A DNA stretch of 64,000 bases from Convolutriloba macropyga (lineage: Eukaryota): the NCBI RefSeq assembly GCF_964194025.1, contig NC_134474.1, positions 37,262,001-37,326,000 of the forward strand, read 5' to 3'. A program made the position numbers and the translations under genes. How positions within the stretch are numbered: the first letter of the stretch is position 1; the number at the start of each line of letters is the position of its first letter. Below, piece after piece: positions 24,741 to 61,269 of this stretch. The notes under the pieces are model-generated. The model did not search any database and was not told the DNA's origin. It saw only the letters and a program-made list of their open reading frames with translations.

Positions 24741-24800
24741 TCAGACAGGGATAACTAACAAAGGGATCAGGTCAAATCAACAAAATAACAGTGTCATCAT
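24741..24800 (-). ncRNA. Box C/D snoRNA, snR38/SNORD1-like (LSU Gm2815 yeast numbering); representative copy of the 860-bp array
   Basis: Minus strand: box C ATGATGA ... internal CTGA (D') ... AGTTATCCCTGT-CTGA (box D). The 12-nt guide is complementary to LSU ACAGGGAUAACU, and D+5 pairs with the second G. Confidence 0.88.
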
Positions 24801-25189
24801 TAGAATTACAACACAATCGATTTACAGCTCAGCATGAGAATCTCACAAAGTCATTGAAAGTTAAAAAACTTAATTGCAAAAATGCCCGGAAACATCAACT
24901 GAAACTAGGATTCAAACCCTAAAACTTCGTTCGAGAAATATACAACCATAACTAAGTTAGAGAAATTTAACTCATACGAATCACAACAAAAGAAAACAAA
25001 TTAATCATTAGAAGGTTTAGATAGCGTCACCAAAGCCGAAAAATTAGGAGAAATACCCCCAGAACATATTCCTGTCGAACAAAATTATGACGAAAAACAG
25101 CTCGTCTAACGAAGTGAAGTTAGAAGCACAACAACAACCTACCAATTGATTATATAATAGACCATGAACAACAATTCTAATACGGCAAT

Positions 25190-25245
25190 TCAGTTTAGAT
25201 TTGAAAACATCATTGAAAATCTGAAGAGGTGTCAGATAACATCAC
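25190..25245 (-). ncRNA. Box C/D snoRNA, SNORD60/snR48-like (LSU Gm2793); representative copy
   Basis: Minus strand: GTGATGT (C variant) TA TCTGACACCTCT T CAGA (D') ... ATGATGT (C') ... CTGA (D). The guide is complementary to LSU AGAGGUGUCAGA. Confidence 0.8.
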
Positions 25246-25306
25246 GGCAAAGTTCTGTTAAATGAGGGAGCAACGAACACTGAGAACAAAAACAACACTG
25301 AGATTT

Positions 25307-25359
25307 TCAGATAATTTTAAAGCGTCATTGTCAGTCAGAAGACCGTCGAGAATCATCAC
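25307..25359 (-). ncRNA. Box C/D snoRNA, snR73/SNORD35-like (LSU Cm2959); representative copy
   Basis: Minus strand: GTGATGA (C) TTCTCGACGGTCT T CTGA (D') ... CAATGA (C'-like) ... CTGA (D). The guide matches LSU AGACCGUCGUGA at 11 of 12 positions. Confidence 0.8.
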
Positions 25360-28300
25360 ACACAAGTATAAATTAAGCGCACACAAGAAAAGAGCAAGAC
25401 TGTAAGATTACAAAGATAGATCCAAAGACAATATAAAACATGAACTGCTTTAACTCAGCCTTAGTTAGCCAAATTGTTTTTCATGGCAGCCGAGCATTAT
25501 AACTCAGAAGAATGTTCAAAATAATCGCAGAAACATGAATTGATTTTCAGTTACACTGCATTCACAAGAAACAAATTCGTTTACAAACAAATTTGGTTTC
25601 ACACATCCGACAGGGATAACTAACGAAGGGACCAGGTCAAATCAGCAAAATAACGGTGTCATCATTAGAATTACAATACAATCGATTTACAGCCCAGCTT
25701 TAGAATTTCACAAAGTCATTGAAAATTAAAGACTCAATTGAAAAGAAGTCCCGAAACATCAACTGAAACTAGGATTCAAACAATAACACATCGTTCGAAA
25801 AATATACAACTACAACTAAGTTCGAGAAATTTAAGTCATACGAATCACAACAATAGAAAACAAATTGAACATTAGAAGGTTTAGATAGCGTCACCAAAGC
25901 CAAAAAATAGGAGAAATACCACCAGAACATATTCCTGTCGAACAGAATTATGACGAAAAACAGCTCGTCTAACGAAGTGAAGTTAGAAGTACAACCACAA
26001 CCTAACCATTGATTATATAATAGACCATAAACAACAGCTTTCATACGGCAATTCAGTTTACATTTGAAAACATCATTGAAAATCTGAAGAGGTGACAGAT
26101 ATTATCACGGCAAAGTTTTGACAAATTTGGAAAAGAAGGAGCAACAAACAATGAGAACAAAAACTCAAATTCAGATAAATTTAAAGCGTCATTGTCATTC
26201 AGAAGACCGTCGAGAATCATCACACACAAGTACAAAATAAGCGCACACAAGAAAAGAGGGCAAGACTGTAAGATTAAAAAGATAAATCTGAAGGCAATAA
26301 AAAACATGAACTGCTTTAACTCAGCCTAAGTTAGCCAAACTCTTTTTCACGGCAGCCGAGCATTATAACTCAGAAGAATGTTCAAAATAATTGCAGATAC
26401 TAAAATTGATTTTCAGTTACACTGCATTCAGCAGAAACAAATTCGTTTACAAATAAATTTAGGTTCACACATCAGACAGGGATAACTAACAAAGGGATCA
26501 GGTCAAATCAACAAAATAACAGTGTCATCATTAGAATTACAACACAATCGATTTACAGCTCAGCATGAGAATCTCACAAAGTCATTAAAAGTTCAAAAAA
26601 AATCAATTGCAAAAATGCCCTGAAACATCAACTGAAACTAGGATTCAAACCATAACACTTCGTTCGAGAAATATACAACCACAACTAAGTTAGAGAAATT
26701 TAACTCATACGAATCACAACAAAAGAAAACAAATTAATCATTAGAAGGTTTAGATAGCGTCACCAAAGCCGAAAAAATAGGAGAAATACCCCCAGAACAT
26801 ATTCCTGTCGAACAAAATTATGACGAAAAACAGCTCGTCTAACGAAGTGAAGTTAGAAGCACAACAACAACCTACCAATTGATTATATAATAGACCATGA
26901 ACAACAATTCTAATACGGCAATTCAGTTTAGATTTGAAAACATCATTGAAAATCTGAAGAGGTGTCAGATAACATCACGGCAAAGTTCTGTTAAATGAGG
27001 GAGCAACGAACACTGAGAACAAAAACAACACTGAGATTTTCAGATAATTTTAAAGCGTCATTGTCAGTCAGAAGACCGTCGAGAATCATCACACACAAGT
27101 ATAAATTAAGCGCACACAAGAAAAAAAGAGCAAGACTGTAAGATTACAAAGATAAATCGGACGGCAATATAAAACATGCACTGCTTTAACTGGGCCTAAG
27201 TTAGCCAAACTGTTTTTCAAGGCAGCCGAGCATTATCACTTAGAAGAATGTTCAAAAAATAATCGCAGATACTAGAATTGGTTTTCAGTTACACTGCATT
27301 CAGCAGAAACAAACTCGTTTACAAACAAAATTGGGTTCACACATCAGACAGGGATAACTAACAAAGGGATCAGGTCAAATCAACAAAATAACAGTGTCAT
27401 CATTAGAATTACAACACAATCGATTTACAGCTCAGCATGAGAATCTCACAAAGTCATTGAAAGTTAAAAAACTCAATTGCAAAAATGCCCTGAAACATCA
27501 ACTGAAACTAGGATTCAAACCATAACACTTCGTTCGAGAAATATACAACCACAACTAAGTTAGAGAAATTTAACTCATACGAATCACAACAAAAGAAAAC
27601 AAATTAATCATTAGAAGGTTTAGATAGCGTCACCAAAGCCAAAAAATAGGAGAAATACCACCAGAACATATTCCTGTCGAACAGAATTATGACGAAAAAC
27701 AGCTCGTCTAACGAAGTGAAGTTAGAAGCACAACCACAACCTACCAATTGATTATATAATAGACCATGAAGAACAATTCTCATAGGTCAATTCAGTTTAG
27801 ATTTGAAAACATCATTGAAAATCTAAAGAGGTGTCAGATAACATCACGGCAAAGTTCTGGAAAATGAGGGAGCAACGAACACTGAGAACAAAAACTTAAA
27901 TTCAAATAATTTTAAAGCGTCATTGTCAGTCAGAAGACCGTCGAGAATCATCACACACAAGTATAAATTAAGCGCACACAAGAAAAAAGAGCAAGACTGT
28001 AAGATTACAAAGATAAATCGGACGGCAATATAAAACATGCACTGCTTTAACTGGGCCTAAGTTAGCCAAACTGTTTTTCAAGGCAGCCGAGCATTATAAC
28101 TTAGAAGAATGTTCAAAAAAAATAATCGCAGATACTAGAATTGATTTTCAGTTACACTGCATTCAGCAGAAACAAACTCGTTTACAAACAAAATTGGGTT
28201 CACACATCAGATAGGGATAACTAACGAAGGGATCAGGTCAAATCAACAAAAAAACACATTCATTATTAGAATTACAACACAATCAATTTACAGCCCAGCT

Positions 28301-31300
28301 TGAGAAATTCAAAGACAATCAAAATTAAAAATTTCAATTGAAAAAATGTCTTGAAACATCAACTGAAACTAGGATTCAAACCATAACACTCCGTTCGAGA
28401 AATATACAACCACAACTAAGTTCGAGAAAATTAACTCATACGAATCACAAGCATAGAAAACAATTTGATCATTAGAAATTTTAGATAGCGCCACCAAACC
28501 CGAAAAGATGTGAGAAATAATACCAGAACATATTCCTGTCGCACAAGCATTATGACGAAAAACAGCTCGTCTGACGAAGTGCAGCTAGAAGCACGGCCAC
28601 AACCTACCAATTGATTATATAATAGACCATGAACAACAATTCTCATAGGGCAATTCAGTTTAGATTTGAAAACATCATTGAAAATCTGAAGAGGTGTCAG
28701 ATAACATCACGGCAAAGTTCTGGAAAATGAGGGAGCAACGAACACTGAGAACAAAAACTTATATTCAGATAAATTTAAAGCATCATTGTCAGTCAGAAGA
28801 CCGTCGAGAATCATCACACACAAGTACAAATTAAGCGCACACAAGAAAAGAGAGCAAGACTGTAAGATTACAAAGATAGATCCAAAGACAATATAAAACA
28901 TGAACTGCTTTAACTCAGCCTAAGTTAGCCAAATTGTTTTTCATGGCAGCCGAGCATTATAACTCAGAAGAATGTTCAAAATAATCGCAGATACTAGAAT
29001 TGATTTTCAGTTACACTGCATTCAGAAGAAACAAATTCGTTTACAAACAAATTTTGTTTCACACATCAGACAGGGATAACTAACGAAGGGATCAGGTCAA
29101 ATCAACAAAAAAACACACTCATTATTAGAATTACAACACAATCAATTTACAGCCCAGCTTGAGAAATTCAAAGACAATCAAAATTAAAAAATTCAACTGA
29201 AAAAATGTCTTGAAACATCAACTGAAACTAGGATTCAAACCAAAACACTTCGTTCGAGAAATATACAACCACAACTAAGTTCGAGAAATTTAACTCACAC
29301 GAATCAAAGCAAAAGAAAACAAATTGATCATTAGAATGTTTAGATAGCGTCACCAAATCCGAAAAGTTGTGAGAAATACAACCAGAATATATTCCTGTCG
29401 AAAAACTATTATGACGAAAAACAGCTCGTCTAACGAAGTGAAGTTAGAAGCACAACCACAACCTACCAATTGATTATATAATAGACCATGAACAACAATT
29501 CTCATACGGCAATTCCGTTTAGATTTGAAAACATCATTGAAAATCCGAAGAGGTGTCAGATAACATCACGGCAAAGTTCTGGAAAATGAGGGAGCAACGA
29601 ACACGGAGAACAAAAACTTAAATTCAAATAATTTTAAAGCGTCATTGTCAGTCAGAAGACCGTCGACAATAATCACACAGAAGTACAAATTAAGCGCACA
29701 CAAGAAAAGAGAGCAAGACTGTAAGATTACAAAGATAGATCTGAAGGCAATATAAAACATGAACTTCTTTAACTCAGCCTAAGTTAGCCAAACTGTTTTA
29801 CATGGCAGCCGAGCATTATAACTTAGAATGTTCAAAATAATCGCAGATACTAGAATTAATTTTTAGTTACACTGCATTCACCAGAACAAATTCGTTTACA
29901 AACAAATTTGAGTTCACCACATCAGATAGGGATAACTAACGAAGGGATCAGGTCAAATGAACAAAATAACAGTGTCTTCATTAGACTTACAACACAATCG
30001 ATTTACAGCCCAGCTTGAGAAATTCAAAGAAATTCAAAATTAAAACCTTCAATTGAAAAAATATGTCTTGAAACATCAACAGAAACTAGGATTCAAACCA
30101 TAACACTTCGTACGAGAAAAATACAATCACAACTAAGTTCGAGAAATTTAACTGACACGAATCACAGCAAAAGAAAACAAATTGATCATTAGAAGGTTTA
30201 GATAGCGTCACCAAAACCGAAAAGTTGTGAGAAATACCACCAGAACATATTCCTGTCGAACAAGTATTATGACGAAAAACAGCTCGTCTAACGAAGTGAA
30301 GTTAGAAGCACATCCACAACCTACCAATTGATTATATAATAGACCATGAACAACAATTCTCATACGGCAATTCAGTTTAGATTTGAAAACATCATTGAAA
30401 ATCTGAAGAGGTGTCAGATAACATTACGGCAGAGTTCTGGAAAATGAGAGAGCAACGAACACGGAGAACAAAAACTTAAATTCAAATAATTTTAAAGCGT
30501 CTTTGTCAGTCAGAAGACCGTCGACAATCATCACACAGAAGTACAAATTAAGCGCACACAAGAAAAGAGAGCAAGACTGTAAGATTACAAAGATAGATCT
30601 GAAGGCAATATAAAATATGAACTTCTTTAACTCAGCCTAAGTTAGCCAAACTGTTTTACATGGCAGCCGAGCATTATAACTTAGAATGTTCAAAATAATC
30701 GCAGATACTAGAACTGATTTTTAGTTACACTGCATTCACCAGACCAAATTTGTTTACAAACAAATTTGAGCTCACCACACATCAGACAGGGATAACTAAC
30801 GAAGGGATCAGGTCAAATGAACAAAATAACAGTGTCATCATTAGAATTACAACACAATCGATTTACAGCCCAGCTTGAGAAATTCAAAGACATTCAAAAT
30901 TAAAACCTTCAATTGAAAAAATGTCTTGAAACATCAACTGAAACTAGGATTCAAACCAAAAACACTGCGTTCGAGAAATATACAACCACAACTAAGTTCG
31001 AGAAATTTAACTCACACGAATCACAGCAAAAGAAAACAAATTGATCATTAGAAGGTTTAGATAGCGTCACCAAATCCGAAAAGTTGTGAGAAATACCACC
31101 AGAACATTTTACTGTCAAACAAGTATTATGACGAAAAACTTTTGGCCTAACGAAGTGAAGCTAGAAGCACAACCACAACCTACCAATTGATTATATAATA
31201 GACCATGAACAACAATTCTCATACGGCAATTCAGTTTAGATTTGAAAACATCATTGAAAATCTGAAGAGGTGTCAGATAACATTACGGCAGAGTTCTGGA

Positions 31301-34300
31301 AAATGAGAGAGCAACGAACACGGAGAACAAAAACTTAAATTCAAATAATTTTAAAGCGTCTTTGTCAGTCAGAAGACCGTCGACAATCATCACACAGAAG
31401 TACAAATTAAGCGCACACAAGAAAAGAGAGCAAGACTGTAAGATTACAAAGATAGATCTGAAGGCAATATAAAATATGAACTTCTTTAACTCAGCCTAAG
31501 TTAGCCAAACTGTTTTACATGGCAGCCGAGCATTATAACTTGAATGTTCAAAATAATCGCAGATACTAGAACTAATTTTTAGTTACACTGCATTCACCAG
31601 ACCAAATTCGTTTACAAACAAATTTGAGCTCACCACACATCAGACAGGGATAACTAAGGAAGGGATCAGGTCAAATGAACAAAATAACAGTGTCATCATT
31701 AGAATTACAACACAATCGATTTACAGCCCAGCTTGAGAAATTCAAAGACATTCAAAATTAAAACCTTCAATTGAAAAAATGTCTTGAAACATCAACTGAA
31801 ACTAGGATTCAAACCAAAAACACTGCGTTCGAGAAATATACAACCACAACTAAGTTCGAGAAATTTAACTCACACGAATCACAGCAAAAGAAAACAAATT
31901 GATCATTAGAAGGTTTAGATAGCGTCACCAAATCCGAAAAGTTGTGAGAAATACCACCAGAACATTTTACTGTCAAACAAGTATTATGACGAAAAACATT
32001 TCGCCTAACGAAGTGAAGCTAGAAGCACAACCACAACCTAACCATTAATTATACAATAGACCATGAACAACAATTTTCGTACGGCAATTTTCCGTTTACA
32101 TTTGAAATTATCATCAAAAATCTGAAGAGGTGTCAGATATCACGGCAATATTTTGGCAAATTTAGAAAAAAAAGGAGCAACAAACAATGCGAACAAAACT
32201 CAAATTCAGAAAATTTTAAGGCGTCACTGTCAGTCAGAAGACCGTCGAGAGTCATCACACAAACAAGTACAAGTTGAACGCCACAAGAAAAGAGCAACAC
32301 TTTAACATTACAAAGATAAATCTTATGGCAAAATAAAACATTATCTGCTTTAACTCAACCTAAGTTAGCCAAACTGTTTTTCATGGCAGCCGAGCATTAT
32401 AACTTAGAAGAATGTTCAAAATAATCGCAGATACTAGAAATGATTTTCAGTTACACTGCATTCACCAGAACAAATTCGTTTACAAACAAATTTGGGTTCA
32501 CATATCAGACAGGGATAACTAACGAAGGGATCAGGTCAAATCAACAGAACAACATGTTCATCACTAGAATTACAACACAATCGATTTACAGCCCAGCTTG
32601 AGAAATTCAAAGACATCCAAAATTAAAAACTTCAATTGAAAAAATGTCTTGAAACATCAACAGAAACTAGGATTCAAACCAAAACACTTCGTTCGAGAAA
32701 AATACAATCACAACTAAGTTCGAAAAATTTAACTGACACGAATCACAGCAAAAGAAAACAAATTGATCATTAGAAGGTTTACATAGCGTCACCAAAACCG
32801 AAAAGTTGTGAGAAATACCACCAGAACATATTCCTGTCGAACAAGTATTATGACGAAAAACAGCTCGTCTAACGAAGTGAAGTTAGAAGCACAACCACAA
32901 CCTACCAATTGATTATATAATAGACCATGAAAACAATTCTCATAGGTCAATTCAGTTTAGATTTGAAAACATCATTGAAAATCTAAAGAGGTGTCAGATA
33001 ACATCACGGCAAAGTTCTGGAAAATGAGGGAGCAACGAACACTGAGAACAAAAATTTAAATTCAGATAAATTTAAAGCGTCATTGTCAGTCAGAAGACCG
33101 TCGAGAATCATCACACAGAAGTACAAATTAAGCGCACACAAGAAAAGAGCAAGACTGAAGATTACAAAGATAGATCTGAAGGCAATATAAAACATGAACT
33201 GCTTAAACTCAGCCTAAGTTCGCCAAACTGTTTTTCATGGCAGCCGAGCATTATAACTTAGAAGAATGTTCAAAATAATCGCAGATACTAGAAATGATTT
33301 TCAGTTACACTGCATTCACCAGAACAAATTCGTTTACAAACAAATTTGGGTTCACATATCAGACAGGGATAACTAACGAAGGGATCAGGTCAAAACAACA
33401 GAACAACATGTTCATCACTAGAATTACAACACAATCGATTTACAGCCCAGCTTGAGAAATTCAAAGACATCCAAAATTAAAAACTTCAATTGAAAAAATG
33501 TCTTGAAACATCAACAGAAACTAGGATTCAAACCAAAACACTTCGTTCGAGAAAAATACAATCACAACTAAGTTCGAAAAATTTAACTGACACGAATCAC
33601 AGCAAAAGAAAACAAATTGATCATTAGAAGGTTTACATAGCGTCACCAAAACCGAAAAGTTGTGAGAAATACCACCAGAACATATTCCTGTCGAACAAGT
33701 ATTATGACGAAAAACAGCTCGTCTAACGAAGTGAAGTTAGAAGCACAACCACAACCTACCAATTGATTATATAATAGACCATGAAGAACAATTCTCATAG
33801 GTCAATTCAGTTTAGATTTGAAAACATCATTGAAAATCTAAAGAGGTGTCAGATAACATCACGGCAAAGTTCTGGAAAATGAGGGAGCAACGAACACTGA
33901 GAACAAAAATTTAAATTCAGATAAATTTAAAGCGTCATTGTCAGTCAGAAGACCGTCGAGAATCATCACACACAAGTACAAATTAAGCGCACACAAGAAA
34001 AGAGAGCAAGACTGTAAGATTACAAAGATAGATCCAAAGACAATATAAAACATGAACTGCTTTAACTCAGCCTAAGTTAGCCAAATTGTTTTTCATGGCA
34101 GCCGAGCATTATAACTCAGAAGAATGTTCAAAATAATCGCAGATACTAGAATTGATTTTCAGTTACACTGCATTCAGAAGAAACAAATTCGTTTACAGAC
34201 AAATTTGAGTTCACCACACATCAGACAGGGATAACTAACGAAGGGATCACGTCAAATCAACAAAATAACAGTGTCATCATTAGAATTACAACACAATCGA

Positions 34301-37300
34301 TTTACAGACCAGCTTGAGAATCTCAGAAAGTCATTAAAAGTTAAAACTCAATTGAAAAAATGTCCTGAAACATCAACTGAAACTAGGATTCAAACCATAA
34401 CACTCCGTTCCAGAAATATACAACCACAAATAAGTTCGAGAAATTTAACTCACACGATTCACAGCAAAAGAAAACAAATTGATCATTAAAAGGTTTAGAT
34501 AGCGTCACCAAATCCGAAAAGTTGTGAGAAATACCACCAGAACATTTTACTGTCAAACAAGTATTATGACGAAAAACATTTCGCCTAACGAAGTGAAGCT
34601 AGAAGCACAACCACAACATAACCATTAATTATATAATAGACCATGAACAACAATTTTCGTACGGCAATTTTCAGTTTACATTTGAAAACATCATCAAAAA
34701 TCTGAAGAGGTGTCAGATATCACGGCAATATTTTGGCAAATTTAGAAAAAAAAGAGCAACAAACAATGCGAACAAAACTCAAATTCAGAAAATTTTAAAG
34801 CGTCACTGTCAGTCAGAAGACCGTCGAGAGTCATCACAAACAAGTACAAGTTGAACGCCACAAGAAAAGAGCAACACTTTAACAATAAAGATAAATCTTA
34901 TGGCAAAACAAAACATTATCTGCTTTAACTCGGCCTAAGTTAGCCAAACTGTTTTTCATGGCAGCCGAGCATTATAACTTAGAAGAATGTTCAAAATAAT
35001 CGCAGATACTAGAATTGATTTTCAGTTACACTGCATTCACCAGAACAAATTTGTTTACATACAAATTTGAGTTCACCACACATCAGACAAGGGATAACTA
35101 ACGAAGGGATCAGGTCAAATCAACAAAATAACAGTGTCATCATTAGAATTACAACACAATCGATTTACAGCCCAGCTTGAGAAATTCAAAGACATTCAAA
35201 ATTAAAAACTTCAATTGAAAAAATGTCTTGAAACATCAACTGAAATTAGGATTCAAACCAAAAACACTTCGTTCGAGAAATATACAACCACAACTAAGTT
35301 CGAGAAATTCAACTCACACGAATCACAGCAAAAGAAAACAAATTGATCATTAGAAGGTTTAGATAGCATCACCAAATCCGAAAAGTTGTGAGAAATACCA
35401 CCAGAACATTTTACTGTCAAACAAGTATTATGACGAAAAACATTTCGCCTAACGAAGTGAAGCTAGAAGCACAACCACAACCTAACCATTAATTATATAA
35501 TAGACCATGAACAACAATTTTCGTACGGCAATTTTCCATTTACATTTGAAATCATCAAAAATCTGAAGAGGTGTCAGATATCACGGCAATATTTTGGCAA
35601 ATTTAGAAAAAAAGGAGCCACAAACAATGCGAACAAAACTCAAATTCAGAAAATTTTAAGGCGTCACTGTCAGTCAGAAGACCGTCGAGAGTCATCACAC
35701 AAACAAGTACAAGTTGAACGCCACAAGAAAAAAGCAACACTTTAACATTACAAAGATAAATCTTATGGCAAAATAAAACATTATCTGCTTTAACTCAGCT
35801 TAAGTCAGCCAAACTGTTTTTCATGGCAGCCGAGCATTAGAACTGAAGAATGTTCAAAATAATCGCAGAAACTAGAATTTATTTTCAGTTATACTGCATT
35901 CACCAGAAACAAATTCGTTTACAGACAAATTTGAGTTCACCACACATCAGACAGGGATAACTAACGAAGGGATCACGTCAAATCAACAAAATAACAGTGT
36001 CATCATTAGAATTACAACACAATCGATTTACAGCCCCGCTTGAGAATCTCACAAAGTCATTGAAAGTTAAAAACTCAATTGAAAAAATGTCCCGAAACAT
36101 CAACTGAAACTAGGATTCAAACCATAACACTCCGTTCGAGAAATATACAACCACAACTAAGTTCGAGAAATTTAACTCATACGAATGACAACAATAGAAA
36201 ACAATTTGATCATTAGAAATTTTAGATAGCGTCACCAAATCCGAAAAGTTGTGATTTTCCTGTCGAACAACTATTATGACGAAAAACAATTCGTTTGACG
36301 AAGTGCAGCTAGAAGCACGGCCACAACCTACCAATTGATTACATAATAGACCATGAACAACAATTCTCATAGGGCAATTCAGTTTAGATTTGAAAACATC
36401 ATTGAAAATCTGAAGAGGTGAAGAGGTGTCAGATTACATCACGGCAAAGTTCTGGAAATGAGGGAGCAACGAACACTGAGAACAATAACTTAAATTCAGA
36501 TAAATTTAAAGCGTCATTGTCAGTCAGAAGACCGTCGAGAATCATCACACACAAGTACAAATTAAGCGCACACAAGAAAAGAGAGCAAGACTGTAAGATT
36601 ACAAAGATAGATCTGAAGGCAAAATAAAACATGAACTGCTTTAACTCAGCCTCAGTTAGCCAAACTGTTTTTCATGGCAGCCGAGCATTATAACTTAGAA
36701 GAATGTTCAAAATAATCGCAGATACTAGAATTGATTTTCAGTTACACTGCATTCACCAGAACAATTTCGTTTACAAACAAATTTGAGTTCACCACAGAAC
36801 AGACAGGGATAACTAACGAAGGGATCGGGTCAAATCAACAAAATAACAGTGTCATCATTAGAATTACAACACAATCGATTTACAGACAAGCTTGAGAATC
36901 TCAGAAAGTCATTAAAAGTTAAAACTCAATTGAAAAAATGTCCTGAAACATCAACTGAAACTAGGATTCAAACCATAACACTCCGTTCGAGAAATATACA
37001 ACCACAACTAAGTTCGAGAAATTTAACTCATACGAATCACAACAATAGAAAACAAATTGATCATTAGAAATTTTAGATAGCGTCACCAAATCCGAAAGTT
37101 GTAGGAAATACCACCAGAAAAAGTTCCTAACGAACAAGTATTATGACGAAAAACAGCTCGTCTAACGAAGTGCAGCTAGAAGCACGAGCCCAACCTAAAA
37201 ATTGATTTTACAGCAGACCGTAAACAACAATTTTCAAACGGCAATTCAGTTTACATTTGGAAACATTATTGAAAATCTGAAGAGGTGTCAGATAACATTA

Positions 37301-39259
37301 CGGCAAAGTTTTGGCAAATTTGGAAAAGAAGGAAAAACGAACACTGAGAACAAAAAGTCAAATTCAGACAAATTTAAAGCGCCATTGTCAGTCAGAAGAC
37401 CGTCGAGAGTCATCACAAACAAGTACAAATTAAATGCACACAAGAAACGAGCAAGACTAACATTAAAAAGATAAATCTTATGGCAATATAAAAAATGAAC
37501 TGCTTTAACTCAGCCTAAGTTAGCCAAATTGTTTTTCATGGCAGCCGAGCATTGTAACTTAGAAGAATGTTCAAAACAATCGCAGATACTAGAATTGATT
37601 TTCAGTTACACTGCATTCACCAGAAACAAATTCGTTTACGAACAAATTCGGGTTCACACATCAGACAGGGATAACTAACGAAGGGATCAGGTCAAATCAA
37701 CAAAACAACATATTCATCATTAGAATTACAACACAATCGATTTACAGCCCAGCTTGAGAAATTCAAACCAAAACACTTGGTTCGAGAAATATACAACCAC
37801 AACTAAGTTCGAGAAATTTAACTCACACGAATCACAGCAAAAGAAAACAAATTGATCATTAGAAGGTTTAGATAGCGTCACCAAATCCGAAAAGTTGTGA
37901 GAAATACAACCAGAACATTTTCCTGTCGAACATGTATTATGACGAAAAATAGTTTGTCTAACGAAATGCAGCTAGAAGCACAACCCCAAACTAAAAATTG
38001 ATTTTAAAATAGAACATGAACAACAATTTTCATATCGCAATTCAGTTTACATTGGTAAACATCATTGAAAATCTGAAGAGGTGTCAGATAACATCACGGC
38101 AATATATTGGCACATTTGGGAAAAAAAGGAGCAACGAGCAATGAGAACAAAAATAGAGTACCAATTAAAAGCACACTAAAAAATATAGCAAGACTGTAAG
38201 ATTAAAAAGATAAACCTGATGGCAATATAACACACGAACTGCTGTAATTCAGCCTAAGTTAGCCAAACTGTTTTTCATGGCAGCCGATCATTAGAACTTA
38301 AAAGAATGTTCAAAAAAATCGCAGATACCTAATTCATTTTCAGTTACACTGCATTCGCCAGAGCAATATCGGACAACAGGTGTCAAAATTTATTACCCCA
38401 AGAAAGGAAAACGTAACCACTGCTAAAGAGATACTGTAACCAAGCATGAGAATTCAACCGTTCTGGAGCCCATTCCGAACAAGAACTACAAGTCTGTTCA
38501 AATCAAAAATCTTCTCTTTCTATCTGAGAGTGATAGCATGGATCTGAAAAGTAAGCAATAGTTCTCGAACAATTTAAAGACCTCAATTCTAATTCTGCTC
38601 ACTCATTTATCAGACAACAGGTCTCAGAACACATCACAAATTTTGATTTTAAATATTAACAGCTCAAAAAACTCAGGCTCTAAATACAGCAGTTTCCAGC
38701 GATCGACAAGCGAAGACATAACTAAGATATCAGTGGCAATTAATTACATCCAGTGTCAACAAAAAGTAAATCGGAGCTGGAACAATTTAAAGTTGCTGAT
38801 CAGTCAGAATGTTTGGAAAATTACATTAAAAATCGTCTTGACATCATAAAGATCAAACAATTATCTCAAATTGTGCATGAAGAGCACATGTGCCGAAAAG
38901 CTTCAGCTTCGATTAAAAAATGAACTAAATTTATCTCCTCTGATCACAAAATGCCAACTAACAGAAGTACCAATAAATCTATGAGATCGAAACACTGAAC
39001 TCAAACACGGCCCAATTTTTCCGTTTCGCGATGTTGTAGATGTGAGGTGTTGGAATATTATATTCAAATTCATATCACGGAGACTCCTTTGTGAGGCAGC
39101 AGCCTATCAGAAAATTTAAAGACATCTTATCCTTAGGATTTGATGCCTGATAACAGTGCGCTCATTTAACTCAAGTCTACCAAGGACTATCACAATGTAA
39201 GAACTTTCCGGGCCCGTGCAGAAATGCACGACTCCCCTTGATGCTATGCAAAAAAAAAC

Positions 39260-39320
39260 TCAGACAGGGATAACTTGTATCAGCAATCAGGTTTAGTCAA
39301 CTGAAATAAGTTGTCATCAT
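39260..39320 (-). ncRNA. Box C/D snoRNA, snR38-type, divergent paralog (second copy at 47654-47714)
   Basis: ATGATGA ... CTGA ttg CTGATA ... AGTTATCCCTGT CTGA. The interior differs from the 860-bp-array type. Confidence 0.8.
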
Positions 39321-39883
39321 TAGAAGAACTCTTTGTTAAACGCAGTCTTAAAAATTAGATGCTAAGTTAATTGGTTGCATATTCAGACAAACTTTTCAGC
39401 ACATTCAATAAAAGAAAGTAGTGGGAAACACATATTCACAACATAAACCACCGCCAGATCAGTTTATATTCAAATTTCTCATAGCTTAAAAATAAAATTC
39501 TGGATGTAAAAAAGCATCGTTCACAATCCAATTTGAGTTCGCAAATCAGACAGGGATAACTAACAAAGTAATCAAGGCAAATCGACAAGGTGATGTGATA
39601 GTGTCACCATTAGAGTTACAAAATCAATTCATACATCTGATGTACCCATAAAAGCATAGAAGCAGGGAGTAAAGGCATACAAGCAGTGTGATAGACAAAA
39701 CCTCAAGTGAACATTATAACAAAAATGGGTAAAAAATTACTGGTTAAACAAGTCTATTAGTGTGTCAACTCAGTAGTACAAAAGTCGATTGTTATCTTCC
39801 AATAACTAGTGAGGTCAGAAAAATATTCGAATTTTCCACAGGATCTGAAAATTAATCAACAGCTTTCAAATAATTTAATGACG

Positions 39884-39938
39884 TCAGTTCTAATTTTGTT
39901 CACTCATTTATCAGACAAGAGGTGTCAGAATACATCAC
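39884..39938 (-). ncRNA. Box C/D snoRNA, Gm2791-type (best-preserved copy)
   Basis: GTGATGT A TTCTGACACCTCTTG T CTGA taa ATGA ... CTGA. Confidence 0.8.
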
Positions 39939-40325
39939 AGAACTTGATTTTAAATTAAACTTAAAAATCCGGATCAAAATACAGCTATCAAACCCATGAA
40001 AATTACATCCTGTGCCAAAAACGAGTAAATCGGAGCAAGAACAATTTAAAGTTAATGATGAGGCCGATTATTTGAAATTTGCAACAATAAAAGAAAACAT
40101 CGCGGCGTCATAACGATCACATAGTTATTGCAAATAATGCATGATGAGCAACTGTTCAGAGAAGCTTGCGCTTCGATTATATATCAGAACTTGACAATTT
40201 CTCTAATCACAATGAAATGACAACGCACAGAAGTAATTATTGAACGCCAAATTAGATAGATGCCTCAAAAAGAAAAAAGCAATGCAGTGCTTCGAACACA
40301 AATTATCACATAAAACTACTACATG

Positions 40326-40378
40326 TCAGAGCTACTCACATCTTCAGGAGAAATCAGAAGACCGTCGTGTGTCATCAA
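40326..40378 (-). ncRNA. Box C/D snoRNA, snR73/U35-type
   Basis: TTGATGA CA CACGACGGTCT T CTGA ... AAGATG ... CTGA. Perfect 11-nt guide to AGACCGUCGUG. Confidence 0.75.
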
Positions 40379-40439
40379 AAAATTGTATAAATTTCATGCA
40401 CAAAATACATGCACTATAAAAGCGAATAATTAAAGTTTT

Positions 40440-43400
40440 CCATTAAAATTAAAAATCAAGCTAACCTAATTGAGAGGCAAAAACCCTGCAAGATAGAATC
40501 CAAATATCAACCATCAATTCTACATTTTGGCAGAAAACAAATCTCCCGAATTTCACCAAAAGTTGTTGAACCTGAAAAAATATATGAGTCCGATTTGCAA
40601 AAAGCGGAGTCTGCTATGTGCTTCACCACTTACTTAACATAAACAAGAAGACTTAATTATAACGTAATTCCAAAAATATTAACTTATAAAAAATCACGTT
40701 TAACAGAGTAAATATTGAAATTTGGATGTCAAATCAACGTTAACAATCACATTTGGGTCCACAAATCAGACAGGGATAACTAACAAAGGAACTCAAAAAA
40801 TGCCCAAAACAAACTGAAACCAGGATTCAAACTTCAATTTTCTGCGAGAACTATACAGCCAAAACTAAGTTAGAGAACTTTAAGTCATACGAAGCACAAC
40901 GATAGAAAACAAATTGATCATTAGAAGGTTTATATAGCGTCACCAAATCCAAAAATATGTCAAAAATACAACCAAAACAATTTCCTGTCGAAAAAGTATT
41001 GAAGAAAAACCGTCGTCTAACGAAGTGAAGCTGGAGCACAGCCAAAACCTAACAATTATATATTAGACCATGAACTACAATTTTCATATCGCAATTCAGT
41101 GTACAATTGGAGAAATCATTAAAAATCTGAAGAGGTGTCAGATAACATCACGGCAATATTTTGGCAAATTTGGAAAAAAAGAGCAACGAACAAGAAAAAC
41201 ACGAATTCAGATGATTTTAAAGCGTCATTGTCAGTCAGAAGACCGTCGGGAGCCAGCACAAACCAGTACAAATTCAATGCGACAAAGTTCTCCATTAAAA
41301 TTAAAAATCAAGCTAACCTAATTGAGAGGCAAAAACCCTGCAGGATAGAATCCAAATATCAATCATCAATTCTACATTTTGACAGAAAACAAATCTCCCG
41401 AATTTCACCAAAAGTTGTTGAATCTGAAAAAATATATGAGTCCCATTTGCAAAAAGCGGAGTCTGCTATGTGCTTCACCACTTACTTAACATAAACAAGA
41501 AGACTTAATTATAACGTAATTCCAAAAATATTAACTTATAAAAAATCACGTTTAACAGAGTAAATATTGAAATTTGGATGTCAAATCAACGTTAACAATC
41601 ACATTTGGGTCCACAAATCAGACAGGGATAACTAACAAAGGAACTCTAACTAACACAATCGATTTACAGTCTAGCTTGAGAATTTTACAAAGCTATTGAG
41701 AATTAAGAAAAATAGAAAAAATGCCCAGAACTAACTGAAACCAGGATTCAAACTTTAATTTTCTGCGAGAACTATACAGCCAAAACTAAGTTAGAGAACT
41801 TTAAGTCAAACGAAGCACAACGATAGAAAACAAATTAATCATTAGAAGGTTTATATAGCGTCACCAAATCTAAAAATCTGTCAAAAATACCACCAGAACA
41901 TTTTCATGACGAAAAAGTATTGAAGAAAAACCGTCGTCTAACGAAGTGAAGCTAGGAGCACAGCCAAAACCTAACAATTATATATTAGACCATGAACTAC
42001 AATTTTCATATCGCAATTCAGTGTACATTTGGAGAAATCATTGAAAATCTGACGAGGTGTCAGATAACATCACGGCAATATTTTGGCAAATTTGGAAAAG
42101 AGCAACGAACAAGGAGAACAAAAACTCGAATTCAGATGATTTTAAAGCGTTATTGTCAGTCAGAAGACCGTCGGGAGTCACCACAAACCAGAACAAATTC
42201 AATGCAGACAAAGTTTTACATCAAAATTAAAAATCAAGCTAACCTAATTGAGACGCAAAAACCCTGCAGGATAGAATCCAAATATCAACCATCAATTCTA
42301 CATTTTGACAGAAAACAAATCTCCCGAATTTCACCAAAAGTTGTTGAACCTGAAAAAATATATGAGTCCGATTCGCAAAAAGCGGAGTCTGCTATGTGCT
42401 TCACCACTTACTTAACATAAACCAGACTTAATTATAACGTAATTCCAAAAATATTAACTTATAAAAAATCACGTTTAACAGAGTAAATATTGAAATTTGG
42501 ATGTCAACTCAACGTTAACAATCACATTTGGGTCCACAAATCAGACAGGGATAACTAACAAAGGAACTCTAACTAACACAATCGATTTACAGTCTAGCTT
42601 GAGAATTTTACAAAGCTATTGAGAATTAAGAAAAATAGAAAAAATGCCCAAAACTAACTGAAACCAGGATTCAAACTTTAATTTTCTGCGAGAACTATAC
42701 AGCCAAAACTAAGTTAGAGAACTTTAAGTCAAACGAAGCACAACGATAGAAAACAAATTAATCATTAGAAGGTTTATATAGCGTCACCAAATCTAAAAAT
42801 CTGTCAAAAATACCACCAGAACATTTTCATGACGAAAAAGTATTGAAGAAAAACCGTCGTCTAACGAAATGAAGCTAGGAGCACAGCCAAAACCTAACAA
42901 TTATATATTAGACCATGAACTACAATTTTCATATCGCAATTCAGTGTACATTTGGAGAAATCATTGAAAATCTGACGAGGTGTCAGATAACATCACGGCA
43001 ATATTTTGGCAAATTTGGAAAAGAGCAACGAACAAGGAGAACAAAAACTCGAATTCAGATGATTTTAAAGCGTTATTGTCAGTCAGAAGACCGTCGGGAG
43101 TCACCACAAACCAGTACAAATTCAATGCAGACAAAGTTTTACATCAAAATTAAAAATCAAGCTAACCTAATTGAGACGCAAAAACCCTGCAGGATAGAAT
43201 CCAAATATCAACCATCAATTCTACATTTTGACAGAAAACAAATCTCCCGAATTTCACCAAAAGTTGTTGAACCTGAAAAAATATATGAGTCCGATTCGCA
43301 AAAAGCGGAGTCTGCTATGTGCTTCACCACTTACTTAACATAAACAAGACTTAATTATAACGTAATTCCAAAAATATTAACTTATAAAAAATCACGTTTA

Positions 43401-45170
43401 ACAGAGTAAATATTGAAATTTGGATGTCAAATCAACGTTAACAATCACATTTGGGTCCACAAATCAGACAGGGATAACTAACAAAGGAACTCTAACTAAC
43501 ACAATCGATTTACAGTCTAGCTTGAGAATTTTACAAAGCTATTGAGAATTAAGAATAATAGAAAAAATGCCCAAAACTAACTGAAACCAGGATTCAAACT
43601 TTAATTTTCTGCGAGAACTATACAGCCAAAACTAAGTTAGAGAACTTTAAGTCAAACGAAGCACAACGATAGAAAACAAATTAATCATTAGAAGGTTTAT
43701 ATAGCGTCACCAAATCTAAAAATCTGTCAAAAATACCACCAGAACATTTTCATGACGAAAAAGTATTGAAGAAAAACCGTCGTCTAACGAAGTGAAGCTA
43801 GGAGCACAGCCAAAACCTAACAATTATATATTAGACCATGAACTACAATTTTCATATCGCAATTCAGTGTACATTTGGAGAAATCATTGAAAATCTGACG
43901 AGGTGTCAGATAACATCACGGCAATATTTTGGCAAATTTGGAAAAGAGCAACGAACAAGGAGAACAAAAACTCGAATTCAGATGATTTTAAAGCGTTATT
44001 GTCAGTCAGAAGACCGTCGGGAGTCACCACAAACCAGTACAAATTCAATGCAGACAAAGTTTTACATCAAAATTAAAAATCAAGCTAACCTAATTGAGAC
44101 GCAAAAACCCTGCAGGATAGAATCCAAATATCAACCATCAATTCTACATTTTGACAGAAAACACATCTCCCGAATTTCACCAAAAGTTGTTGAACCTGAA
44201 AAAATATATGAGTCCGATTCGCAAAAAGCGGAGTCTGCTATGTGCTTCACCACTTACTTAACATAAACAAGACTTAATTATAACGTAATTCCAAAAATAT
44301 TAACTTATAAAAAATCACGTTTAACAGAGTAAATATTGAAATTTGGATGTCAAATCAACTTTAACAATCACATTTGGGTCCACAAATCAGACAGGGATAA
44401 CTAATAAAGGAACTCTAACTAACACAATCGATTTACAGTCTAGCTTGAGAATTTTAAAGTTATTGAGAATTAAGAATAATAGAAAAAATGCCCAAAACTA
44501 ACTGAAACCAGGATTCAAACTTTAATTTTCTGCGACAACTATACAGCCAAAATTAAGTTAGAGAACTTTAAGTCATACGAAGCACAACGATAGAAAACAA
44601 ATTGATCATTAGAAGGTTTCTATAGCGTCACTAAATCGAAAAATCTGTCAAAAATACCACCAGAACATTTTCATGACGAAAAAGTATTGAAGAAAAACCG
44701 TCGTCTAACGAAGTGAAGCTAGGAGCACAGCCAAAACCTAACAATTATATATTAGACCATGAACTACAATTTTCATATCGCAATTCAGTGTACATTTGGA
44801 GAAATCATTGAAAATCTGACGAGGTGTCAGATAACATCACGGCAATATTTTGGCAAATTTGAAAAAGAGCAACGAACAAGGAGAACAAAAACTCGAATTC
44901 AGATGATTTTAAAGCGTCATTGTCAGTCAGAAGACCGTCGGGAGTCACCACAAACCAGTACAAATTCAATGCAAACAAAAAAAGATAGCAACACTGTTGA
45001 TTAAAAAGATAAATCTGATGGCAACATCATAAATGAACTGCTTTAACTCAAGCTAAGTTAGCGAAACCGTTTTTCATGCCAGCAGAATATTAGCAGAACT
45101 TAAGAAAATTTATAATAATCGCAGATACTTGAATCGATCTTCAGTTACACTGAATTCACGAAAAAGTTAG
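40440..45170 (-). repeat. Tandem array, 923-bp unit x~5, nearly identical; carries U60-type, box-C-mutated U35-type and truncated snR38-type copies
   Basis: TCAGACAGGGATAACT at 41618, 42541, 43464 and 44387, with exact 923-bp spacing. Confidence 0.93.
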
Positions 45171-47944
45171 GCTAATCAAGGAAACTAAAAGAAGCAACCG
45201 AAGAAATTGAAGTGCGCTCAACTTAGACATTTAATCAATTTTGCCAAAAAAAGATGAAACTAACGTCGGGCGAATTGCTCTCAAACGACCGGCGAGCAGT
45301 TGGCTTTGTCAGTAGCTAGCCATGTATTAGTGAGGCCAGCTCTAGCTTAATTGAAGGAGCGTGAGGTGAGGGCAATAGATGATGACATCAAGCCACATAA
45401 CAGCAGCTGAAGTGAGGAATCCAAAAAAGAGTTAAGAAAGACAGAGAGAGAGAGAGAAAGGGTGCGAGAGATAAAACGTTAACGAGAAAGAGAAGGAAAG
45501 AAGCCCCAACGAACAGAGGGCGAGAGAGCTAGAAATATTTTCCATAACGAGATTCGACTCTGCAACTTCTAGTTCTCTAGACTTGTTGGAAATTAAATCA
45601 TAGAAAAAACTGAAAGTACAAAAAAATTCAAAATTTCGCAGTGAAAATTTCAAAACCAAATTTTGTCTCTGGAGTTTTCCCATGCAACACATCAGCAAGA
45701 CTTAAAGTTTTGTTGGCCAGTAATGATCGTTAAACTCTTTTAAACAAAGATATTCAAAAACTCTAAAAGCAATTGCAAATTTTAAAATTGTGCTAAAATT
45801 TGTAATTTTAATCTCTTCAGGGCCATTTCATTGAATTAAGAGACTATCTATGATTCCTATTTCAAGCCTTAAATAGTTTCGGTGGCTCATTAAGATTCAA
45901 GATAATAAGGGAAAAAAATTTATCAAAAAATTGCAAAAACTCGAGTCATTAAAATATTGATAACCAATCCATTAACTCTAGAAACTATGCAGCAACTTAT
46001 TATCAACCTCGGAGGAGGTCCCTGATGCCAATGAAGAAAAAATTCAAGTATTAAAAAAACTTGAAAACAATATTTTGAAATTCCTTAAACTCGTGAAAGT
46101 AAAATCTTAAAGATTCATTTACATCTAGAAAATATGTGGTAACTTATTATAAGAGCCTAGAGCAGGTTCCTGAGCTCTTGAGGTTGGAGAATTCTAAAAC
46201 AATGACAAATTTTTCGTTCATCAACTTAACCAACCTCAATTTTAGTCTGGTCCAACAAAAAATTCAAAAAAATGAAAAAAACAAAAAATTGCAACACTTG
46301 GGCTCAAAAACTCCTTAAAACCGTTTAACCTTAAACTATGGCCTTCCCGGTAGCTTCATCACACTAAGCGGCTGAGGGCTTCTAATGAAACTTGATGCCC
46401 GCTGGGCGCTACCTGTTTATCCCGTTTTTAAGCAAGAAAAGTCAAATGGGTCAGACGAAAAATCGGTCAAGCGAAAAACCGCATAAGAAAAGACCAAAAG
46501 AACTAATAACATACCCGGTAGATTGCCGGAAAATAGCCGCCTTTGATTCTAATAAGCATGATTGGGATTGAAAGAATAGAAGATATTGAAAAAAAAAATT
46601 TTGTACAAAAACATTTTTTAAGTACGATTTATTTTGATGGCATTTCATAGTTGAACATACTTCTGTTTCTTAGAGAGAGGCTACAGGGGCTATTATCAAT
46701 ACCAATAAGCATTAGAGATGTTAAATAAGACTTATGGGAACGACGATCAAATAGCGGGCATCTAAAGTTGGGCTTTATGGGTTTATCCCGTTTCTATTTC
46801 TGACTTCAATTTTTATACTGACTCTGTTCATTTTGATTTGTTTTGCTGAGCAACTGATGTTCAAAATCACTTTTAGCAGAATGAGAGAAACTAGCCTAGA
46901 GAAGTCAAAGATTTCACGCGAAATCTTGAAAAAGCGGCAAAATGAGGTAAAGCGAAACATTTTTTTTTGTTCGACGACGTAAAAAAAAAAACAGGAGCGC
47001 TATAATAGCTGACTGAGAAGATGAGGGCGGCTATTAATAATTGCTACAAACTTCGCTTGAGAGCACCTAAAAATCTTAAAAATCAGGGCCCAAAAATTTG
47101 CCTGAACACCTGGCACACAATGTACAAACTTTACACCGTTAAATATGAGAAACGAGTCGTGATAGCAGCAAGGTTTTCTCTATTGGAGAAAAAATACGCC
47201 AAACATGTGACAAAATCAGGCATAGACAATAAGAACGTCATCACTTGAAAAAGGCAACCTTTGCAATAAATCCCCCGTCTACTTTATGATCATTGAAAAT
47301 CGTGCAATAGATACAGAACTGTCAATTCAACGGTCAGTTCTATTTGTTCAATCATTTATCAGACAAGAAGTGTCAAATACATCACAAAATTCGATTTAAA
47401 TAGTAAGAGCTAAAAACTCAGTGTCCAAATGCAGGATCAAAATTCAAGCAGAGACAGACGACTAAGCTAACAGAGGCAAGCAATTACATCTAGTGTCAAC
47501 AAGTAAACCGGAGCAAGAACAATTTGAAGTTACTAATCAGACCGAATATTCGGAAAAAAACGTCGTGACATCATAAGGACCAAACAATTTTGATAAATAA
47601 TGCATGAAGAGTACCAAGAAATGCACGACTCCTTTTGATGGCATGCATAAAACTCAGACAGGGATAACTTGTATCAGCAATCAGGTTAAGTGAATTCAAT
47701 AATGTTTTCATCATTAGAAGAACTCTTAGTTAAACGCAGTCTTAAAAATTAGATGATAGGTTAATTGTTTGGATATTAAGACAAAGTTTTCAGCACATTC
47801 AGCAGAAGAAAGTAACCAGGCGCTTCACACACATTCATAACATAAAACAACACCATAGAGTTCACATTCAAATTTCTCATAGCTGAACATTGAAAATCTG
47901 AATAAAAAACAAACATCATTCACAATCAACTTTGCGTTCGCAAA

Positions 47945-48004
47945 TCAGACAGGGATAACTAATAAAGTAATCAAATCAAATCAACAAGGTGATATTGTCA
48001 TCAT
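47945..48004 (-). ncRNA. Box C/D snoRNA, snR38-type (older single copy)
   Basis: ATGATGA at 48004-47998 and AGTTATCCCTGT-CTGA ending at 47945. Confidence 0.78.
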
Positions 48005-48859
48005 TAGAGTTACAAAACAATCGATTTACAGCCTAGCTTGAGAATTGCACACAAGCTCATTGAAAATTAACTCACTTGAAAAGTTGTTCAAAATCAACTG
48101 AACCTAGGATTCAAACTATAACGTCGGTCCAGAAATATAAGACTAGAACAACGGTCGAGAACCCAGTGATACCAAGCACAACAGACAAAAAATTGATCAT
48201 TAGAAAGTTTAGATAGAAATTCCAGCAGATATTACTGTCTGAAAAAGTATTAAGACGACAAACAGTTCATCTAACAAGTCAAGCCAGGAATACAACCAAC
48301 ACCTAACAATTAATTGTATGGTTGATAATGAACAACAAAAATCAAAAAGCAATTCAGTTTACATAAGGAAACATCATTGAAAATCTGAAGAGGTGTCAGA
48401 TAACATCCCGTCAAAATTTTTGACCGTCTTATTTTTATCCCTGGCGGTCGATTATGAGTACACATCGCTTGGAACTCAAGTAGGCTTCTGGTCTTTAACA
48501 GTTTCTGTAACGTCAGAAACTTAATTTATTAATTTCAATGGTAGAAGCAACCGATCTTGTTAACCAACTTAAACATCTATTTGATTAATTTTGACAAATA
48601 GACGAAAACCTGAACATTCATGTAAAAAAATTCAGCTTCACACCTCGTAGACTCAATAAAGGCAATTTACAGTATGAAATATGAGAACCTAAACACAGGC
48701 GTAACATAGGCAAAAAGTTCTCTATCGAGGTATAGTCAAGACGTCATGATTAGAAAAACGCAACCTCTACAATAAATCCAATGAATTCACTATACATTAA
48801 GTTCACAGAACAGATAAATAGATAAAGAACAAAAACTATCCCAAATGGGCACTTTCAAA

Positions 48860-48913
48860 TCAGAAAAATTTTACATCTTCAGGAAAAATCAGAAGACCGT
48901 CGTGTCTCATCAC
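48860..48913 (-). ncRNA. Box C/D snoRNA, snR73/U35-type
   Basis: GTGATGA GA CACGACGGTCT T CTGA ... AAGATG ... CTGA. Confidence 0.8.
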
Positions 48914-49191
48914 AAAACACAACCCTAACAAACTTAAAACTACAGCGATCAGATCGAAAACTTTGGAAGAGTGGTAACGATGTCGCTATTCATAAAAACT
49001 AAGTCAGATGAAATCTGAAGCGTCACTATTAACAGAAGACCGTCGTGACTGAAGTCAACCAGTCATATATTGAATGCAAATGAGTCCAAAGCGAACCAAT
49101 TGCTGATCTTGTTTGATATCTTATTTCACTAAGAATGGAGGAAAATAAAAAGCATATAGTTTGAAAGACTCGCGAAAAACTTGAGGCACAC

Positions 49192-49247
49192 TCAGTTTCA
49201 GTAATTTAACATCATTGATAATCTGAAGAGGTGTCAGGTATCATCAC
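49192..49247 (-). ncRNA. Box C/D snoRNA, U60-type with canonical box C
   Basis: GTGATGA TAC CTGACACCTCT T CAGA ttatca ATGATGT ... CTGA. Confidence 0.8.
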
Positions 49248-60528: not shown

Positions 60529-60580
60529 TCAGTAGCTGCGTTATTTTCATGTTCATCAAACAAGAGGTATCAGACATCAT
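60529..60580 (-). ncRNA. Box C/D snoRNA-like, Gm2791-type variant (also 61993-62046 and 63539-63592)
   Basis: ATGATGT (last T shared with the guide) CTGATACCTCTTG T TTGA (D') ... ATGA ... CTGA. The guide pairs with CAAGAGGUGUCAGA with one G-U wobble. Confidence 0.65.
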
Positions 60581-60826
60581 AGCAGACAGAAGAAAATACC
60601 CAAATTGATTGTTATCCAATAAAACACGTACAATTACTTTTCGGACTGAAGACAACAATAAAATACAACTGTAAACCACTTGAAACATTTGAAGTATAGA
60701 GGTATTTACGTGGATGAAGGGATTTACATGATTTGAAAGGATGAAGACATTTACAACATTGCTCTATGACGCGCCACTACTTCAAGGATTATCCCGAAGA
60801 ACAGACTGCCAGATTTCCCCTTTTGC

Positions 60827-61269
60827 CACCGGCAAAAGTAAGTCAACCCCCTAGTTTTACGAAAACTATTTTTAAAGCAATATTACTTCACCTTAAAATT
60901 ACATTTTGAAACCAATTTTTACACCATTGATCCCCTGCACTAGTACTCTAGCCTACCTATGAAATTCAGATAAAACACAACGTTCACCTACCAGAAATCC
61001 CAATAAAAAATATGAAAACATATCACATCTTGTCACAACCTTCTGTTTGCTGTAATACTTTGATGGAGTTCCTCGACTTTACATTGGGATCTCTGGTAAG
61101 TGAATGTTGCGTTTTATCTAAATTTCATAGGTAGGCGAGAATTTAAGGGATCAATGTTGTCTGAAAAATGTTTTAAAATTATTTAAAAATGTGATTTTAA
61201 ATTGAAGTACAAATGCCTCAAAAAATTTTACTTCGTGAAAATAGGGAGTGCTACCTTATTTTGGCAGTT
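60827..61269. mobile_element. Foldback MITE-like element inside the 1.5-kb unit (also 62267-62822, and 63815 to window end)
   Basis: Long imperfect inverted arms, e.g. GCCTACCTATGAAATTCAGATAAAAC / GTTTTATCTAAATTTCATAGGTAGGC. Ends are CACCGGCAAAAGTAAG ... CTTACTTTTGCAG (right end clearest in the second copy). Confidence 0.75.

Follow-up and report, generated by a model that had tools for sequence, protein, structure and literature searches.

In the large-subunit (LSU) ribosomal RNA (rRNA), two guanosines that lie one nucleotide apart in helix 88 of domain V are both 2′-O-methylated in yeast, Arabidopsis, and Drosophila (PMC5199042, PMC8583080, PMC11014333), and the second of the fly pair, Gm3326, lies about 3.5 Å from the E-site tRNA (PMC11014333). 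In yeast, a single box C/D small nucleolar RNA (snoRNA), snR48, directs Gm2791 and Gm2793 with one guide, by way of an unusual D′ region of 6 nucleotides (nt), AUGUUA, and two alternative C′/D′ structures (PMC5199042, PMC5389607). In Drosophila, CD55 is assigned to Gm3324, and CD33a/b plus CD55 are assigned to Gm3326 (PMC11014333). Separate snoRNAs have been reported for the Arabidopsis sites Gm2792 and Gm2794 (PMC8583080), while SnoR1 has also been predicted for both (PMC8053127). Here, we describe a 64,000-nt stretch of chromosome 7 of the acoel Convolutriloba macropyga (G000:C7:37262001-37326000; hereafter the window, in whose positions all coordinates are given unless another contig is named), which contains three families of candidate box C/D snoRNA genes with guides complementary to this rRNA segment. 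We found no description of snoRNAs from the phylum of this animal in the literature searched.

Allowing at most one mismatch, the sequence TCTGACACCTCTT occurs 36 times in the window, with 36 of 36 occurrences on the minus strand and 0.10 expected. A looser scan yielded 39 guide-bearing elements, which measure 52-56 nt from box C to box D and, as with every snoRNA element listed below, all lie on the minus strand. They form three sequence families, namely A (n = 30), B (n = 6), and C-type (n = 3). The layout of family A is GTGATGT-TAT-CTGACACCTCTT-CAGA-TTTTCA-ATGATGT-13 nt-CTGA, in which the D′ box, CAGA, is located directly 3′ of the guide. Family B reads GTGATGT-ATT-CTGACACCTCTTGT-CTGA-TAA-ATGAGTG-13 nt-CTGA, and the C-type elements read ATGATGT-CTGATACCTCTTGT-TTGA-...-CTGA, with box C (ATGATGT) abutting the guide and with bodies that are unlike those of A and B. 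The B and C-type guides have two extra bases, GT, ahead of their D′ boxes (CTGA and TTGA, respectively), and the GA of D′ starts 3 nt past CTCTT in A and 5 nt past it in B and the C-type. Since each element offers a single GA dinucleotide as D′, the registers are unambiguous.

The guides were compared with the animal's own rRNA, taken from the same assembly (LSU, L009:3983-7504; 5.8S, L009:2148-2299; small-subunit (SSU) rRNA from L011). Positions 2914-2934 of its LSU read AAACAAGAGGTGTCAGAAAAG. The A guide forms 13 contiguous base pairs (bp) at 2918-2930, placing G2922 at the fifth pair counted from CAGA; the B guide forms a mismatch-free duplex of 16 bp at 2916-2931, in which G2920 occupies the fifth position from CTGA. 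The C-type guide forms 14 bp plus one G.U pair in the same register as B, and so also places G2920 at the fifth position. The B duplex takes in two bases (AC) immediately 5′ of the AAGAGG core that, to our knowledge and judging from the yeast sequence, are not conserved across eukaryotes. An original prediction, made from the letters of the window alone, had proposed that the nucleotide at the fifth position from D′ differs by 2 nt between A and B (yeast G2793 and G2791, respectively), and pairing with the animal's own rRNA bears this out. Its coordinates are likewise right (A, 25190-25245 and 49192-49247; B, 16769-16823 and 39884-39938; a variant at 47334-47386), and the intact copies of each of the three families do conform to its box C consensus, RTGATGT.

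That G2920 and G2922 correspond to yeast G2791 and G2793 is supported by three considerations. First, other guides in the cluster match the animal's own G2944 (+22) and C3088 (+166), and these distances equal the spacing of known sites, namely yeast G2815 and C2959, Arabidopsis G2816 and C2960, and fly G3348 (PMC5199042, PMC8583080, PMC11014333). Second, both pairs consist of Gs that are one nucleotide apart (PMC5389607). Third, the SNORD60 site in humans, Gm4370 (formerly G4340), aligns with yeast Gm2793 (PMC8583080, PMC10520360).

Intact copies combine box C GTGATGT, GTGATGA, or ATGATGT with box D CTGA, and in all three families an antisense stretch of at least 10 bp ends at D or D′ with a known 2′-O-methylation site at the fifth pair. 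The elements would therefore be read as single-guide box C/D snoRNA genes belonging to three sequence families, in all of which the spacer between box C and D′ pairs with LSU helix 88. In family A, fibrillarin would methylate the animal's own G2922 (human G4340/4370), and in family B and the C-type the target would be G2920, so that both Gs are predicted to be 2′-O-methylated in this acoel, each by a separate conventional guide. We hold, with moderate confidence, that separate guide families probably serve the two positions and that both are methylated; expression, assembly into small nucleolar ribonucleoproteins, and methylation itself are what we infer from the genomic sequence. That both marks occur in all three organisms named at the outset counts in favor of this reading.

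Further support comes from the way in which the copies vary. Across five A lineages with diverged flanks, 0 of 16 columns are variable in the guide plus D′ vs. 11 of 13 in the spacer between C′ and D (Fisher's p 2e-6). No complement to these second spacers was found in the animal's own rRNA, which fits free drift of the spacer. In an alignment of 28 A units, the minor-allele fraction is 0.019 in the guide vs. 0.11-0.15 in the flanks, with the variants being common to sub-families of units and hence representing few mutational events. Within families, the snoRNA bodies are 85-98% identical vs. 52-78% for 200-nt flanks. Guide changes in copies with intact boxes are C-to-T and compatible with G.U pairing; the C-type copy near 62028, which has a distal mismatch, is the one exception. 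Moreover, the G2920 register is retained in three diverged lineages, namely B, the diverged B copy Bv (see below), and the C-type. This pattern would fit single-guide snoRNAs that are under purifying selection in both registers.

The copies are far more numerous than the few examples given in the original prediction; those examples are present, amongst 30 A and 6 B elements that mostly sit in tandem arrays with periods of 860, 922, and 773 bp. The main A array (19141..38097) comprises 23 units with a period of ~860 bp (box C GTGATGT, guide TATCTGACACCTCTT, D′ CAGA, C′ ATGATGT, and box D CTGA), and includes intact copies at 25190-25245 and 38042-38097. A second A array (41096..44840) has five units with a period of 922 bp, four of which have a G at guide position 2. 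Two A copies are solitary: one at 48354..48409, with box C GGGATGT, and another at 49192..49247, with the canonical box C GTGATGA and with flanks that cannot be aligned with those of other A copies. All A copies share a further feature (e.g., at 25222-25240), in that a 5′ segment of the guide, AUCUGA, is the antiparallel complement of D′ plus one base, UCAGAU; this pairing is the sole hairpin of the centroid fold.

The sole fully intact B copy is located at 39884..39938 (box C GTGATGT, a 16-nt guide, D′ CTGA, a C′-like ATGAGTG, and box D CTGA), and is spanned, unchanged, by a contig from a 2016 DNA run of another study (X5). A B mini-array (16769..18403) holds three copies with a period of 773 bp. 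In one, at 16769-16823, the guide is intact but box C reads CTGATGT. In the other two, near 17575 and 18348, box C reads GTAATGT and guide position 5 forms a G:G mismatch, and both are taken to be dead. A degenerate B copy at 38583..38637 has two guide mismatches and box D TTGA. The diverged copy, Bv (47334..47386), retains intact boxes and the B register, and its two guide changes, both C-to-T, pair as G.U. The elements between 60 and 64 kb had been regarded as variants of B, and they do share its register (G2920). They nevertheless constitute a separate family, the C-type, with box C ATGATGT, D′ TTGA, and one G.U pair. Its copies in the window are located at 60529-60580, about 61993-62046, and 63539-63592 (span 60529..63592), and belong to an array with a period of ~1.6 kb that continues with five further copies past the window end, giving a total of eight, of which six to seven are intact.

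Several observations weigh against the view that both registers are served by functional genes. About six of the 30 A copies are fully intact in boxes and guide, and four more carry the position-2 mismatch alone, with the remaining copies being damaged in box C (GTGATAT, GTAATGT, GTGATAA), D′, or D. In the main A array, box C varies no less than the flanks do. Three of the six B copies are dead, two of them by a mismatch at the methylation position, and a single B copy is fully intact. Overall, about 6-10 A copies and 1-3 B copies can be counted as intact in boxes and guide. The D′ boxes of A (CAGA) and the C-type (TTGA) are non-consensus; the corresponding internal box is CTGA in B, and C′ is ATGATGT in A, ATGAGTG in B, and not clear in the C-type. 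No canonical terminal 5′/3′ stem is predicted in the flanks, and folding z-scores range from -0.5 to +0.7; a clear terminal stem is also absent from many animal snoRNAs. At gathering thresholds there is no match in Rfam, and relaxed scans of A, B, and C-type elements gave sub-threshold matches only. Finally, none of the five sequencing runs found to contain the locus is recorded as RNA. Four runs covering 38000-42000 show uniform depth without splice joints, and their contigs add up to roughly the size of the genome, so that they are evidently DNA; their contigs break at the repeated guide, and the sole joint is the 922-bp tandem repeat.

These same points bear on the alternative that only one register is functional and that the other family, produced as the array was amplified, is decaying and guides nothing. 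Broken boxes or guide mismatches in 17 of 30 A and three to five of six B copies, the lone intact B copy, the non-consensus D′ boxes of A and the C-type, and the absence of runs recorded as RNA would all count in favor of such a scenario. It accounts poorly, however, for the persistence of both registers in copies whose flanks have diverged past alignment, for the invariance of guide and D′ across the diverged A lineages, for the perfect 16-bp pairing of B together with the intactness of most C-type copies, and for the methylation of both sites in fly, yeast, and plant. We consider this alternative unlikely, and continue to favor separate guides for G2920 and G2922.

How families A and B are related is a separate question. 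The original prediction had suggested a duplication followed by a register shift, and this did not find support, given that A and B flanks do not align and the similarity between their bodies is marginal (p about 0.01-0.02). Flanks within each family align at 67-83% identity, whereas those of A and B cannot be aligned with one another by blastn or MAFFT. The cluster is a mosaic of modules, in which ~230 nt of upstream flank are common to the B modules (including Bv) and ~300 nt of downstream flank are common to the A modules, and A and B modules are interleaved with shared modules for G2944 and C3088. When the segments from D′ to D were compared, A and B were slightly more similar than shuffled sequences (p 0.012-0.019), in a tested segment that includes the constrained C′ box. 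In the same kind of shuffle test, C-type elements resembled neither A nor B once guide and boxes were set aside (p 0.5-0.6).

A recent register shift between A and B is nonetheless possible. In its full form, this scenario would make the two families recent paralogs, separated in this lineage when 2 nt were gained or lost where the guide meets D′, and then subfunctionalized. Such a history would explain why A and B have in common the unusual box C GTGATGT, an architecture of 55-56 nt, and a 3-nt offset from box C to CTGACACC, as well as D′-to-D segments that score above shuffles. Indels at the junction do arise in the array, as is evident from the A copy at 36421 (window 36380-36440), whose guide is separated from D′ by an 8-bp tandem duplication, CACCTCTT. 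Against it stand the unrelated flanks of A and B alongside flanks that align within each family, the C′ box constraint that lies inside the shuffle-tested segment, and the dissimilarity of the C-type to both. The common box C is itself open to a second explanation. Position 7 of box C is U, rather than A, in most copies, and in all three families this U can extend the pairing into the A-run that follows the target; judged from sequence, it could also pair with the A that precedes box D. The shared terminal U of box C may therefore reflect common descent or convergence. In addition, the fly has separate guides for the two Gs (PMC11014333), so the split may be old. Taken together, recent paralogy appears decidedly doubtful to us. 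Were A and B to derive from one gene by a 2-nt indel, a methylation site would have been caught in the act of "walking" along the rRNA, with array amplification providing the raw copies and the 8-bp duplication at 36421 showing the mutational route.

Comparison with yeast raises the further possibility that one family methylates both Gs in the manner of snR48 and that the other is redundant. The acoel elements and snR48 are alike in recognizing the same rRNA segment with a guide located upstream of D′, and in pointing to the same two Gs. They differ in that the acoel has separate genes with 4-nt D′ boxes offset by 2 nt, and lacks the long D′ region that is associated with dual specificity. Yeast D′ boxes without a 5′ C give rise to multi-site or shifted methylation (PMC5389607), and by analogy the UUGA D′ of the C-type may direct methylation at two sites; Drosophila CD55 is, moreover, assigned to both Gm3324 and Gm3326 (PMC11014333). 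The 5′ C that favored a single site in the yeast work is, however, kept in A (CAGA) and B (CUGA), each element has one GA dinucleotide to serve as D′, and an invariant guide and D′ would not be expected in a redundant family. We therefore regard dual-site guidance by one family as very improbable, and the separate-guide reading predicts instead that the acoel keeps both marks by means of ordinary single-site guides in place of the dual-site mode of yeast.

The closest parallel would appear to be Drosophila. In both animals, different C/D snoRNA genes are assigned to the two helix 88 Gs, which are methylated in the fly and predicted to be so in the acoel, and the +22 site of the fly has its own multi-copy guide, CD6a-c, just as the acoel cluster has +22 guides. 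The likeness is drawn from published assignments rather than from sequence, and has its limits, since CD55 is assigned to both sites whilst B and C-type elements have a conventional single register, and the fly genes are few (one to three copies) as opposed to tens in arrays. On this basis, the predicted arrangement resembles that of the fly more closely than the single dual-specificity snR48 of yeast. The original prediction had described A and B as splitting the job of yeast snR48; the two registers do point to both snR48 Gs, but a split between separate guides is not new, as it has already been reported in an animal, with CD55 and CD33a/b of Drosophila (PMC11014333). The acoel stands out for how many copies it has and for their arrangement in arrays.

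Plant SnoR1 (Rfam RF00345, clan CL00066) directs, by the canonical rule, methylation of the G2791 equivalent (Gm2792), which is also the predicted target of B. It is the only same-target Rfam family that A, B, and C-type elements matched, with scores of 20.1 bits for B, 12.6 for A, and 13.7 for the C-type (i.e., 12.6-20.1 bits) vs. a threshold of 49. Plant At3gCDbox101.1 is grouped with SnoR1 for the purposes of comparison, and the papers disagree as to whether a separate snoRNA exists for Gm2794 (PMC8583080, PMC8053127). Human SNORD60 has the same target as that predicted for family A, the G2793 equivalent (28S G4340, or Gm4370 in the newer numbering; PMC10520360, PMC8583080). Relaxed scans gave no match of A, B, or C-type elements to the Rfam families SNORD60 and snR48, with SNORD60 absent at E values up to 10. 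In the conservation labels of the fly study, Gm3324 is marked DmYADd, without the letters H and X that the label of Gm3326 carries (PMC11014333). If these letters, taken here apart from their legend, denote human and Xenopus, vertebrates appear to be without the G2791-equivalent mark. The acoel locus adds one data point on the genes that specify these two modifications in different eukaryotes and leaves current views unchanged, and it provides exact candidate genes and rRNA positions for methylation mapping.

In whole-genome searches, matches to strict A and B patterns (27-29 nt, at most three mismatches) and to exact guide-plus-D′ patterns are confined to this chromosome 7 cluster; these were pattern searches, which copies elsewhere with other boxes or more wobble changes could escape. 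Two loose TAGA matches outside the cluster have no boxes. Dispersed sites matching a gapped TGACACCTCTTCTGA pattern (37 observed vs. 18 for a reversed-pattern control) were rejected as candidates, being either coding-like sequence or low-copy repeats in which box C does not occur at the required distance. An exception among them, a low-copy dispersed repeat with 99-100% identity over 301 nt between G000:C7:38941380-38941680, C9:27663021-27663321, and C15:43917101-43917401, contains ATGATGT, then 24 nt including ATCTGACACCTCTT, and then CTGA. We rejected it as a SNORD60-type gene and consider it a chance look-alike, given that a fourth copy (on C16), which is 85% identical, does not have the motif.

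The window has a G+C content of ~35%, and across its whole 64 kb there is no open reading frame of at least 150 amino acids on either strand. The snoRNA cluster is embedded in an extended non-coding region, for which no host gene was identified. Amongst the other members of the cluster, guides of the form CACGACGGTCTT followed by CTGA, located on the minus strand at 40322-40403, 48853-48935, and about 51795, point to C3088 of the animal's own LSU (yeast C2959), and the third snoRNA of the 860-bp cassette contains a mismatched version of the C3088 guide, TTGTCGACGGTCTT. With regard to the rRNA genes themselves, the contig that provided the LSU sequence (G000:C20:1-23500; L009, L010) carries 5.8S and LSU in units at 8,086-bp spacing, with an internal transcribed spacer 2 of ~1.68 kb. 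SSU has no Rfam match anywhere in C20:1-17999, and is found together with LSU on contig C751.

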